Below the pieces are notes generated by a model. It did not search any database. It worked only from the letters and a program-made list of their open reading frames with translations, and was not told the origin of the DNA. From Trichoplax adhaerens (Eukaryota > Animalia > Placozoa), in contig NW_002060949.1 of the NCBI RefSeq assembly GCF_000150275.1, forward strand, positions 4,682,753-4,746,752: DNA of 64,000 nucleotides. The letters run 5' to 3'. Below, one piece after another: positions 46,384 to 51,845 of the stretch; the stretch's first letter is position 1, and each line of letters starts with the position of its first letter. The position numbers were made by a program, and so were the translations under genes.

Positions 46384-49300
46384 ATGGATTCTAATGAAGA
46401 TCGACTACCGACAGGACAGACTTTCCATGACCTCACTGTGGTAGAATTACGTCGTCAACTACGTGCTCGTGGATTGAAAGTCGTAGGTCGTAAAGCAGAC
46501 TTGGTAGGTGCTTTTTCTTTGCGTGACCAAGTTTTACAAATGCCTGATAGAAATCGAGAACCGCGTGTCATCAGTATAATCTTAGCCATGAATAACAGTG
46601 ATTCATCATAATGATTACATTAAACAATGTAGGCAGAAAAGTTCAATTTAGCAGCTCACTATAGCATATGTCGCCATAGAAGTTGATCACTAATCACTTG
46701 TGTGCGTACATACTGTACATTGCATGTCTGTACTGTACAATATGTATACGTACGCCTATACAGTATACTGTTCGTTGTATAGTGTACATTTTTAGTGTTC
46801 ACTGTCAGTACGGTATGCGCTGCAGCACTGTGCTGTATTGTGCATGAAATATGTCTACGTGTGCACAGCAGCTTGGCTACGTCATGCCTACTTCGGTTAA
46901 GAGGAAAATTTTGAAAGTTTTATCAAGCCATTGAATGATTCAGCGACTTCGCATATCTTATTTCACATATTATCTATCATACACTACTGTGAGCCTGCGG
47001 GGACATACAATTATGCGTTAAATTACTGTAGGCTTTGAGAATGTACAATAATAATACTACATCAGTGAAACGTTGGTTCCTTTGTGTTGATCATTTGCTT
47101 TCATTGAAATTTCCTACATATACGTACGTATAAACGCAAACGATTCTATGTACCTTGGATCTCTCAACGAAGTTAATAACTGCTACATTATAATTATATA
47201 CAGTACATTAATGAATACTGTACTGTACTCTGTCTTGGGAAAAGTTCAAGTTCGTACTTATCGTTAGCCTACATATACAGTACAATACGCTACAGATGCT
47301 TGTTCCAAGTCAGTATTCGCATCCCGTATACTGTACTGTACTATATGCAAATATCAAATGGTCAGTAGATTTCGCTGACTAGACTAAAGATAGCAAGATT
47401 TATTAGCAATCCATTTACTCACTGTCTCATACTAACTATACTCAAGCGAACATTAGGGTAAGGGATATAGTCGATTTATCAACGTAGTCTACTGAGTATT
47501 CAAGATCCTCCTCTATGTCATACTCCACCAACTTTTACAGTATATGCAGAAATTCTGCAGCTTTCTGCTGACGTGCCTACACTATTGCTTGATTTCGCAG
47601 TGCAGTACTGTATGATGAATTTATGTATCAAACACATAGTTTCAATTAGTATGATTTGTGTAATATAAGCCTGTCTTTTAGAATAATTTGATTCATGAAT
47701 TAATCTGGGATCGATCAATTAAGTTAATAATAAAGCCTTAAAATCGTTTACATGTCGTATCCATATTTCGAACAAGTCCCAATGAATTAATTATCTACCT
47801 GATTACAGTACTGTGGGCACACAGACTTGCAGATGTACGGACAGTAGACGTCATTGCCAACTCATGATTTCATGATTATGGGAGATTACAGTATTTAGTA
47901 CTGTAGTCCATACAGTACAACAGAACATACTGTACAGTACGGTTACAGAGACAGTACTGTACTGATGCCGCTACTGCGTAGAAACAGAAATGTGTTGCTA
48001 CAGTACGGTACTGCACCAACAGGAACACGCAGACTTGAAGAGTCTGTGGACATGTTACCTATAATACAGTACAGTATACTACACTACGCAGTGAGTAATA
48101 ACAATACAGTATGAACAGTACCGTACTTTTTAGAGGAGACGGCAAATGCTTTCATTAACTGTAAGTTAAATATAGCGGGCGGGTGTGATCTGATTGGCCT
48201 TGTATTACTTCGGATTGTCGGTGGATTGATCGATGATCGAGCAATAGGTTCCATTAACGTATTACTACGGTTTATTATTTCATTTAATCACTTAAACTGA
48301 AAGTGTAAAATAAAATTTTCTTATGGAAATGATTCAGTAAATTAATTACAGTATGTATGTATCAAGCTATCTTTGGGAGGGAGTCATTCACTCTACAAGT
48401 AAGTGCAGTAGTGTAAATTGTACGCTATTTGGTGCACACTCTTTCAATGCAATGCAATGCCGGCTATAGTCATTGCGTTTATCTGCAAGTCACTGATGTG
48501 TTCAATCAGTTCCTTCATTTGTCCCTAAATTTATAGAAACTAAAATGTTAACATATTGTCCACTATTTGATAATTTTAGGTACGACGTTTAACTGAAACC
48601 GATGCAGAAGTTAGTACAGATCGAAAGGAAAGGTAAAGACGAATGTACATCCTATCATACCGACAGCAGCATTGTACGAATTTTATGAACTAGTAATCCA
48701 TGTTCTATAGTTCAGAAATAGCTTGCACAGTTAGATTACCAACCTTTAAATATTTACCCTATAATTTTGAGTTCATTTAATGTAAGAGAAAGGTATCTAG
48801 ATTTGTTTTACTACATACTCGCATAACATAAATCAATATGTGTTGTTGTAATGGCTGCTTCCGTGTAGAGTAGGTAACTTATAGTATATAGTACATTTAT
48901 TGTCCTATCAATTATTGGAAGATTTTGATACGGATGGTAGGGTACTGTATATCATAGACTACTCTACACTGACATATTTCGCAATTGAGAAATAAATTTC
49001 ATTTTTTATTTAATGATATATTGATGTGATAGGTGTATTATCTGTAATTAAGTTGTACTGTCCTTTTGTTGTCATTCATACGAGCGACAGTGACTGAGGA
49101 CGATGTACAGTAATTTCATAAACAGTGAATATTTATATTCCTTTTACGTCTAAAAGATGAATATTTTGTAAACATCTTGAATCAACTCGGTATCCTACGC
49201 TTGTATACTTATATAATTTCGCAAGACAACTTTCAGTTAACGAGGTTGTTTATAAAGTATTACCTTTAAGCCTTTTCACTACTTTTCCTATTTTAGACCA

Positions 49301-51845
49301 GAAGAAGAATCCACAAATATGTCCGAGCCTATTAAAATACCTATCAGAGGTTATTCATGACTAACATAATTTTTTTCTTAAATATGGATGAATATTATAA
49401 TAGTCCAAGCGCTAGCTACATAACTATTAAGTCGTAGAAGAAACGATTGAAAATAGCATTCGTTCTGTATTACTTTAATGCGAATACAATAGGTACACAG
49501 TAGAGACCCTAAGAGACTCAGCCTCTCAGGATTTCTAGCGTACAGTACCATAATAAAGATTAGCTTCTTTTTGTATAACTCTGCCTTACGCGCAATACAG
49601 ACATCAGCAGTTGATATTTTTGGTAACTAAAAGTAATCGTTGATGTCTTCAACTTATGCACCAATAGAGACCAAAGATCATAATGGAAAGGTACCTCCAT
49701 CTCCTTTCCTTACTCGTAGCCAGGAAGAACGAGAGGAACTACATAGGGAAAGAGAAAAACGCGCCGAGATCGTTCTATGGAGAAAGCCACTAGTGACATT
49801 ATCTTATTTCTTTCGTGAACTTTTTATAGATATCCGTCATCAAAGCAACAGGTTGTATTAGTGGTGCAGTTTTATTTTACGAAGTATAATGTACCAATCG
49901 GTGTTTTTTTAATTACGATTTTTTCTAATTATATCAATAAAACTTAGGGTTTATCATAATCGAAAAAAATTCAGTGCAATTGGTCTAATGATCTTTAGCT
50001 TATTTCTATTGTATTTAATTGATGGCGAGCATCAGCAGGTACGTCTAATGCAATCTTTCTAATATTGAAGATAAAGTTGACCATTTGTTTTATTCCAGTA
50101 TTACGTAGCTGCTCAGAAACAGATTTTCTGGTGTTTCTACTGGATTGGTTTAGGAGTGTTGTCAAGTATTGGCCTTGGAACAGGATTGCATACGTTCATA
50201 TTATATCTTGTAAGTTTTGTTTTAAATTCTCCTGAAGTATGCCGGGGCTTCATATTTTTTTAATATTTATCGTTTAGGGACCTCATATAGCTAGAGTAAC
50301 TCTTGCAGCTTGGGAATGTGGAAGTGTAGATTTCCCTGAGCCTCCTTATCCGAATGAGTATGCTGTACTTTTATCAAATATAAAATATTACTATTAATTA
50401 TTAATACTAGTTATTTGCTCGTCAAGTATTATATGTCCTGATGAAGAGGGCGACAAGAACTTGCTAACACTTTGGACCATCATGGGGAAAGTTAGATTAG
50501 AATCGATGATGTGGGTTAGTAAGACAAAACTCTATGAACTACATTGTATCGCAATTATTATACTGACACAGCTATTGTTGTGTTGTTTGGCGTATTACCG
50601 AAGTCTTTGCACCCTGTGACTTTATTTTAATTGGGCGTAAATGCTTTAGGGATTAGGAACAGCGGTTGGAGAATTGCCTCCCTACTTCATGGCTCGTGCG
50701 GGTAAATTAAGTATAAATTTCATCCTTGAATCGGATGTTTTGTTAAGTAGTTAGTTGTTATATTTAAATTTTTGTGCTATAGCGCGATTATCAGGATCAG
50801 AGATTGATATGGACGACGAGGAGATAGAAGAGATGGAAGCTATGCTAGCATCTGAGAACAAGGTAATTGGTACTGTGTGGTATAATAATCCGTTAAATTA
50901 TCTAATTTTAACGTTCAGTTTTAATGATCAGTGTTCTGTTCTCTGCAGGATGTGATGACTAGAGTCAAGAAAGCAGTTCACAATTTAGTCCAAAAAGCTG
51001 GATTTTTTGGCATACTTTTATGTGCCTCGGTAAATAGTGTCATCCATAGAAAGCAATTTTTACATGTACTTTTTAGATTTTTAATAGTAGCTAATGTTAT
51101 CATCGTTTGAAGATCCCCAATCCGTTATTTGATTTGGCTGGTATTACTTGCGGACACTTCTTGGTGCCATTTTGGACATTTTTTGGCGCAACTGCTATTG
51201 GTAAAGCTATCGTGAAGATGCATATACAGGTTATTACTCTATATACGATGACGTAACGTTAAGTTGCACTTATGACACGTCATTCCGTTTTTAATTATAT
51301 CCTTTGAAATTGCTTTAACGGTTGTGCTTAACTTTAGAAACTGCTGGTTATTGTAACCTTCTCAAATCATCATGTCGAAAGTTTAACTGAAATAATTGGG
51401 TAAGTAAAATGTTACAATACAGATTTGTCATCGAATCCAAGTTATTACATAAGAGTGTATTTTTTAGTTACTAATAGCGGTTGTTTTCGGATACTAGGAA
51501 TATCCCTCACGTTGGCAATACTCTTAAAAAGCCTTTCGTTGACTATATCGATCATCAGAAACATAAATTACACCGCGAGGAAAATTCGATGGACTCACCG
51601 GTATTTTTAATTTGTTTACTAGTAGTGCGCAATCTAAATTTCTGTTAGAGTCTATCTTTCTTTCGATGTTTATATTAAGTTGATTCTTTTTCTATTATCA
51701 AAAGTCAAACCTTGTTACGCAATTATATTCTGTTTTGGTCATCTTCATGGTATCATTCTTTGCTTTATCAATCGTAAATTCGATGGCACAAAAGTATGCT
51801 AAAAGGTTGGATGACGAGAGACGTTATAAAGTAAAAGATAAATAA
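46384..51845 (+). CDS. VMP1: Vacuole membrane protein 1 (VMP1/TMEM49, DedA-family ER scramblase) with a predicted N-terminal SAP motif
   Basis: Core motifs [91 protein letters not shown] and SIVNSMAQ; stop at 51843-51845. The 5' exons 46384-46503, 48580-48632 and 49297-49349 join in phase to the exon starting at 49668. Confidence 0.93.

Follow-up and report, generated by a model that had tools for sequence, protein, structure and literature searches.

We analysed a 64,000-nucleotide stretch of the Trichoplax adhaerens genome (contig NW_002060949.1, positions 4,682,753 to 4,746,752 of the forward strand; hereafter the window), in which a single gene on the plus strand, spanning window positions 46384 to 51845, is by collinear homology the orthologue of vacuole membrane protein 1 (VMP1), with a predicted SAP domain added at its N-terminus. 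Canonical VMP1, known as human VMP1, C. elegans EPG-3, Drosophila Tango5 and Dictyostelium Vmp1, is an endoplasmic reticulum (ER) phospholipid scramblase and a member of the VTT/DedA superfamily. The SAP domain is very probably part of the VMP1 coding sequence, and an equivalent arrangement was found in several further lineages. Taken as one joint claim, it is probable that this gene architecture is correct and that the SAP domain acts as a localising or nucleic-acid-binding module.

The DNA of the window is AT-rich (GC about 0.32), with short GT-AG introns and animal-type gene content. A stop-free model of 15 GT-AG exons runs from 46384 to 51845 and comprises 1416 nucleotides, or 471 codons, ending with a TAA at 51843-51845. 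This model was analysed exon by exon using profile, PDB and homology searches, and the fold of the N-terminal domain was modelled on a relative, P0003, described below. The parts of the gene, in window positions, are as follows.

46384 to 46503, plus strand: coding exon 1, with the ATG, a short N-terminal tail, SAP helix 1, the loop and the first part of helix 2; its translation closes with ...GRKADL, in phase 0.
46504 to 48579, plus strand: intron 1, 2076 bp, GT...AG; interrupts the SAP domain between positions 28 and 29 of the Pfam profile.
48580 to 48632, plus strand: coding exon 2, 53 nucleotides, AG acceptor and donor GTAAAG, encoding the last part of SAP helix 2 (VRRL) and the first part of the low-complexity linker; phase 2 at its end.
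49297 to 49349, plus strand: coding exon 3, a 53-nucleotide linker mini-exon, entered in phase 2 with an Arg junction codon, containing an in-frame ATG; ends in phase 1.
49319 to 49321, plus strand: the in-frame ATG, codon 66 of the long model and the point at which a SAP-less VMP1 of 406 codons may begin.
49668 to 49851, plus strand: coding exon 4, entered in phase 1; VMP1 N-terminal region, beginning with a charged stretch and matching VMP1 N-terminal fragments of many animals.
49948 to 50038, plus strand: VMP1 exon 5, GT-AG, in frame, collinear with gecko VMP1.
50099 to 50209, plus strand: VMP1 exon 6, from the gene model and collinear with gecko VMP1.
50278 to 50357, plus strand: VMP1 exon 7, likewise modelled and collinear with gecko VMP1.
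50427 to 50514, plus strand: VMP1 exon 8, likewise modelled and collinear with gecko VMP1.
50650 to 50701, plus strand: VMP1 exon 9, likewise modelled and collinear with gecko VMP1.
50783 to 50862, plus strand: VMP1 exon 10, likewise modelled and collinear with gecko VMP1.
50949 to 51029, plus strand: VMP1 exon 11, likewise modelled and collinear with gecko VMP1.
51113 to 51229, plus strand: VMP1 exon 12, which encodes the VTT/DedA core and shares 95% identity with gecko VMP1.
51338 to 51399, plus strand: VMP1 exon 13, likewise modelled and collinear with gecko VMP1.
51498 to 51600, plus strand: VMP1 exon 14, GT-AG, in frame.
51705 to 51845, plus strand: VMP1 exon 15, ending with the TAA stop and within reach of the blastn alignment between the window and the relative L001.

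A previous reading of this DNA, made from the letters alone (the sequence-only reading), had proposed the first four of these exons, joined through splice phases 0, 2 and 1 without a stop, and all of its coordinates, splice sites and phases proved correct. Exon 1 is preceded by an in-frame TGA 8 codons 5' of the ATG, and its donor side reads GTAGGT. Coding exons 1 to 3 lengthen a VMP1 of otherwise canonical length by about 65 residues.

The same reading had taken exon 4 to be a VMP1 exon, and the VMP1 identity of the gene was confirmed by a tblastn search with a named gecko protein (P0019, "vacuole membrane protein 1 isoform X2 [Paroedura picta]"), which aligned to exons 4-13 in order with a combined E-value of 7.7e-78. 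Exon 12 alone gave a sub-threshold match to the Pfam family VTT_dom (PF09335), with an E-value of 1.1e-4 and a score of 23 bits against a cut-off of 33.9, and the gecko VMP1 itself reaches 29.5 bits there. The remaining VMP1 exons, which are too short for such a search, returned no match when scanned one by one against Pfam. A search with exon 4 (a 60-residue query) returned only short fragments of exon open reading frames (ORFs), and contigs bearing such fragments were fetched for comparison. Two hits, P0015 and P0016, resemble fragments of a mammalian, perhaps human, VMP1 and took no part in the comparison. Among the fetched contigs are those of a close relative (L001-L003), whose corresponding product (P0001) is 79% identical to exon 4. 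In L001, a 31-residue product at 3405-3500 carries a precomputed match to PF27639 (VMP1_C), as does a product of a more distant locus, L010, and the L001 product falls inside the blastn alignment that joins window positions 49676-51856 to L001 (up to L001 position 3511). The last exon of the window, scanned alone with a local copy of Pfam, did not return PF27639. Overall, the Trichoplax gene resembles canonical VMP1 in that exons 4-13 are collinear with the vertebrate protein and in that the internal ATG would yield a protein of 406 codons, but differs from it in the extra N-terminal residues that bear the SAP domain.

Support for a SAP domain split by the 2-kb intron, as exons 1 and 2 had been proposed to encode, comes from profile searches. 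Exon 1 alone passed the threshold of the Pfam SAP family (PF02037) with an E-value of 7.7e-9 and 35.4 bits (curated cut-off 23.9), matching profile positions 2-28 of 37 and breaking off precisely at the end of the exon. The translation of exon 2 then opens with VRRLTE..., of which VRRL is the expected continuation of SAP helix 2. A regular expression for the SAP core, applied in all six frames to the window and to nine other loci, matched solely at the upstream exons, once per locus. An independent counterpart is the database protein P0003 (UniParc UPI0006B0D88A), a single ORF of 130 residues which contains a complete SAP domain (42.8 bits against PF02037), a linker and the VMP1 N-terminus, and which maps onto exons 1 and 4 of the window.

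An AlphaFold model of P0003, built with six SAP exons as the alignment input, places helices at residues 23-32 and 41-57 with a predicted local distance difference test score (pLDDT) of at least 94, a low-confidence and disordered linker at residues 58-78, and a long helix at residues 79-126. When this model was compared with the PDB using Foldseek, the best matches were all SAP domains (Tho1, E1B-AP5, 3'hExo on the histone mRNA stem-loop, and Hcc-1), with probabilities of 0.98-1.0, root-mean-square deviations of 0.5-1.8 A over 36-42 columns and target TM-scores of 0.66-0.77; the E-values were weak (0.2-0.5), which is usual for so short a domain (about 40 residues). The helix-extended loop-helix fold is seen complete in the P0003 model, and for the window the completion of helix 2 by VRRL is read from the sequence. 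Pfam scans of exon 1 and of P0003 returned only SAP and no member of the LEM family, even at E-values up to 1 or 0.1. By its profile match, the domain encoded by exons 1 and 2 is a bona fide SAP domain and not a member of the LEM/HeH family. Neither exon 1 nor exon 12 had a relevant match in sequence searches of the PDB, and an NCBIfam search gave no match.

A SAP exon lies 0.7-1 kb 5' of the VMP1 N-terminal exon, on the same strand, in four other lineages. In all four, the match to PF02037 stops at profile position 28, so that an intron splits the domain at a common point. The four loci are the following, with bit scores against PF02037.

L005, region 9010-10281: SAP exon 9010-9159, 30.1 bits over profile positions 4-28, ending ...GLKAEL and followed by GTAAGT.
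L010/L011, region 827-2100 of L010: SAP exon 827-1024, 27.2 bits, followed by a single exon LQRLGHK-MVVGARKND...SLVLWKKP.
L006-L009, region 1282-2573 of L006: SAP exon 1282-1449, 31.8 bits, followed by an exon IERLQESDKDAE.. and, after it and in frame, by the VMP1 exon; the phases are 0 and 1.
L012, region 3003-4002: SAP exon, 36.2 bits, followed by IERLLNNSD.., a 26-nucleotide mini-exon with an ATG, and the VMP1 exon, with phases 0, 2 and 1.

In L005, the next exon opens VERLQNSDK... and reaches the VMP1 N-terminus within that one exon and frame, and the rest of VMP1 follows. The phases of L012 are those of the window, and its mini-exon corresponds to exon 3. The SAP exon is separated from the VMP1 N-terminal exon by three introns in the window, L001 and L012, by two in L006, and by one in L005 and L010, and the reading frame from SAP to VMP1 is kept across all three layouts. 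That the frame is always kept while the number of introns differs means that introns were lost or gained inside a conserved coding region. As judged from these sequences, the arrangement is inherited rather than accidental, and the SAP exons very probably form part of the VMP1 coding sequence, because the SAP tail and the VMP1 N-terminus share an exon and a frame in L005 and L010 and because P0003 is one ORF. Thus, of the SAP::VMP1 fusion put forward by the sequence-only reading, the part that assigns the SAP exons to VMP1 holds, on the strength of the four lineages and P0003, but the arrangement recurs and is hence neither unique to Trichoplax nor a one-off fusion.

Several of the SAP exons begin with a basic, Asn/Arg/Lys-rich opening (MxxKxNxRN), as seen in an alignment of P0003 with L005:9010-9159, L010:827-1024 and L006:1282-1449. 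This opening could be read as resembling a nuclear-localisation signal. The N-terminus of the SAP exon in the window (MDSNEDR) is acidic, unlike the basic openings in that alignment.

We also considered that the SAP exons might constitute a small independent gene upstream of VMP1, for example one with a 58-residue product, in which case the shared frame would be a coincidence or an artefact of read-through. Reading through the donor of exon 2 does give ...KER followed immediately by a TAA, L001 likewise stops at a TAA past the same donor, and skipping of exon 3 would soon close the frame as well. We rejected the stop past the exon 2 donor as a meaningful signal, however, as it follows from a GTAA donor combined with an exon end in phase 2. 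When exon 1 was used as query in a word-index protein search, no SAP-only protein of 22-70 residues was found, and the same search with P0003 returned P0003 alone, with a length filter that hides full-length relatives. Two separate genes are accordingly a highly improbable explanation, and one that we regard as effectively excluded, since the frame is preserved in three intron layouts and the SAP tail is continuous with VMP1, with no intervening stop, in two lineages; the single ORF of P0003 speaks against it as well.

The comparison with the close relative L001 bears on the two small exons between the SAP exon and exon 4. By blastn, the alignment between the window and L001 is confined to exons, and the introns are unalignable. 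The counterpart of exon 2 is L001 448-500, with equal length (53 nucleotides) and phase, and that of exon 3 is L001 1084-1136, again with equal length (53 nucleotides) and phases and with the ATG kept. For exon 2, blastn identity is 89% over the first 36 nucleotides. Over their whole lengths exons 2 and 3 are 72-74% identical to L001 (72% for exon 2), compared with 15-42% for their 40-nucleotide flanks (15-33% for those of exon 2). The codon at the junction of exons 2 and 3 specifies Arg in both, as AGA in one and CGA in the other, and each of the two exons shows 3 synonymous codon changes between the window and L001. For exon 2, the proposed frame is the sole frame open in both sequences.

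Intron 1, which at 2 kb is unusually long, is packed with low-complexity repeats of the TACTGTAC type. These repeats, roughly pentameric (TACTG/TACAG), form patches at 23114-24823, 34992, 46053-48076 and 58358-59089 of the window, with 21 near-matches observed where 0.26 would be expected.

Several points weigh against our reading of the locus as a VMP1 gene whose SAP domain localises the protein. The exon junctions in the window are ones that we infer from sequence, and the lineages were told apart by sequence divergence and differing intron patterns only. At one further VMP1 locus, L004, no SAP exon was found within 10 kb upstream. The gecko VMP1 showed no SAP domain in a Pfam scan, which implies that core VMP1 function does not require one. 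Moreover, the SAP domain is a short fold, and in some proteins it mediates contacts with other proteins. Finally, the ATG at 49319, as codon 66 of the long model, leaves 406 codons, so that the SAP form could be a minor isoform. Just upstream of the VMP1 exon of L004, on the minus strand at 9112-9273, we observed an ORF fragment resembling a reverse transcriptase (...VLQGSILGPMFF...). A transposon insertion may have shifted the 5' exons of L004 past the 10 kb examined.

The last of these points leads to a second alternative, in which the main product of the gene is the SAP-less 406-codon VMP1 begun at the ATG at 49319, through an internal promoter in intron 2 or through leaky scanning, and the SAP exons appear only in a minor tissue- or stage-specific transcript. 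In that case the fusion would stand but would weigh differently. Human VMP1 has 406 residues, the number of codons left from codon 66. A Met directly after the SAP domain or linker is found at the equivalent place in L001, L012, L010 (MVVGARKND) and P0003 (KMADG..), and exon 3 has no ATG upstream of that at 49319. Both candidate start codons of the window lie within a 10-mer, CACAAATATG, whose only two copies in the 64 kb (46377-46386 and 49312-49321) sit exactly at the two ATGs; the expected number is 0.37, and two copies were reached in 3 of 100 shuffles. Exon 3 has an acceptor site, and hence some transcripts at least should include it as an internal exon. Against this alternative, the codons between the SAP domain and the ATG at 49319 are open, with the synonymous changes relative to L001 noted above. 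The sole downstream Met in L005 and L006 lies 8-9 residues before IVLW, and a start there would lose most of the VMP1 N-terminal region; in these two lineages the SAP ATG therefore looks like the main start, as there is no suitably placed internal Met. We consider it somewhat unlikely that the SAP-less protein is the main product, and likely that two isoforms, a long SAP form and a short canonical one, exist in some lineages.

Returning to the SAP form as a regular product of the gene, its N-terminal segment is rich in charged residues and lacks a signal peptide. We would place it on the cytosolic or nucleoplasmic side of the ER, in line with what has been reported for the N-terminal region of TMEM41B, the sister scramblase of VMP1, of which residue S35 and the C-terminus are cytosolic (10.1101/2020.12.18.423352). 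From there, the SAP domain on its flexible linker would bind DNA, chromatin or structured RNA and hold a pool of the scramblase in place, most likely at the inner nuclear membrane or on chromatin-associated ER, which the protein would reach by diffusion and retention. It is in this way that LEM/HeH proteins and LBR come to reside at the inner nuclear membrane: small extraluminal domains let ER membrane proteins reach it, and chromatin binding retains them. A SAP-less second isoform made from the conserved ATG of exon 3 would probably supply the general ER pool. We advance a role of the SAP domain in tethering to nucleic acid or chromatin at the nuclear envelope only tentatively, by analogy, and the alternatives to a chromatin-facing VMP1 pool are RNA binding at the ER and a role in protein interaction.

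The analogy is one of layout. LEM/HeH proteins (yeast Heh1/Src1 and Heh2, MAN1, LEMD2, emerin and LAP2) combine an N-terminal helix-extended-helix domain, a linker and transmembrane segments, and an analogous layout is proposed for SAP-VMP1. In contrast to these proteins, the SAP-VMP1 domain scores as SAP and not LEM, and it is joined to a lipid scramblase where theirs is joined to a scaffold; the likeness is in working principle only. The closest functional analogy is LBR, a sterol reductase with an N-terminal chromatin-binding module at the inner nuclear membrane, although the sequences and folds are unrelated (Tudor/RS and sterol reductase in LBR, SAP and VTT in SAP-VMP1). The soluble SAP proteins (Tho1/SARNP-Hcc-1, SAF-A/E1B-AP5, PIAS, Ku70, 3'hExo/ERI1 and DEK) share the SAP profile, and the predicted fold of P0003 superposes on theirs, but they are nuclear or cytoplasmic, whereas the domain described here sits on a multi-pass ER membrane protein.

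Alternatively, the SAP domain could serve in protein interaction or regulation on the cytosolic side of the ER, contacting for example the SUMO/ubiquitin machinery or autophagy factors, and have nothing to do with chromatin or RNA. Among the Foldseek matches are the C-terminal domain of CDNF bound to BiP and the p53-binding domain of PIAS1, and VMP1 has roles at ER contact sites and in autophagosome formation (PMC8386813), both of which would suit such a role. Nevertheless, the closest structural matches bind DNA or RNA (the four named above together with DEK and Ku70, the latter on nucleosomes), and the basic residues of the motif (R/K before G-L, and G-x-K) are preserved in all six of the aligned SAP sequences. 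We therefore judge a pure protein-interaction role to be unlikely.

In its most far-reaching form, our proposal is that SAP-VMP1 represents an old animal (or older) form of VMP1 that was lost in vertebrates. The SAP domain would keep a pool of the scramblase attached to chromatin in the inner nuclear membrane or, at mitotic exit, to chromatin-bound ER, and would thereby directly couple lipid scrambling to nuclear-envelope growth, sealing or pore insertion, while the SAP-less isoform would serve the bulk ER. This full scenario is speculative and, as a whole, doubtful.

Elsewhere in the window, a USP32-like deubiquitinase gene lies on the minus strand at 36418-39805, about 10 kb from VMP1. Its large exon (38099-39805) matches Pfam UCH with an E-value of 4.4e-36, and its best named relatives, annotated as "ubiquitin carboxyl-terminal hydrolase 32", are 50-65% identical across vertebrates, molluscs, arthropods and echinoderms. 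In the human genome, too, USP32 and VMP1 lie next to each other, at 17q23, and their proximity may be an old conserved synteny. On the plus strand, 10450-12288 is an unbroken ORF of 612 residues with an N-terminal ubiquitin-like domain, ankyrin repeats and a long Ser/Thr-rich tail; its exact sequence is absent from the contig index, as is that of one further ORF of the window. Pfam gave no match for four minus-strand ORFs at 15-21 kb, and Rfam and tRNA scans of the window were empty.

VMP1 is much studied, in connection with autophagosome formation, lipoprotein secretion, lipid droplets and viral replication, and to our knowledge it is regarded as a plain multi-pass membrane protein without a targeting module. 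Our literature searches found no paper combining VMP1 with a SAP domain (matches to "SAP" were to severe acute pancreatitis or otherwise unrelated), and a paper on the evolution of the DedA superfamily makes no mention of a SAP domain in VMP1. The novelty claimed for the arrangement by the sequence-only reading therefore survives in part: no description was found in the literature, but several lineages share the arrangement and sequence databases already contain it, P0003 carrying a precomputed SAP match there. SAP-VMP1 is thus a conserved form of the protein, recurrent and deposited, yet apparently undescribed.

If the SAP form were a minor isoform without special localisation, the finding would shrink to a detail of annotation. 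The supply of lipid to the nuclear envelope and the balance of its leaflets are under active study (CLCC1/TMEM41B, PMC13061601), and SAP-VMP1 offers a simple natural experiment through its candidate long and short isoforms, which have and lack the SAP domain. Should the domain prove to bind nucleic acid and to be conserved on VMP1 in many non-vertebrate genomes, either some scrambling capacity would be deliberately placed at chromatin or RNA, or VMP1 would have an unrecognised role at the nuclear envelope.

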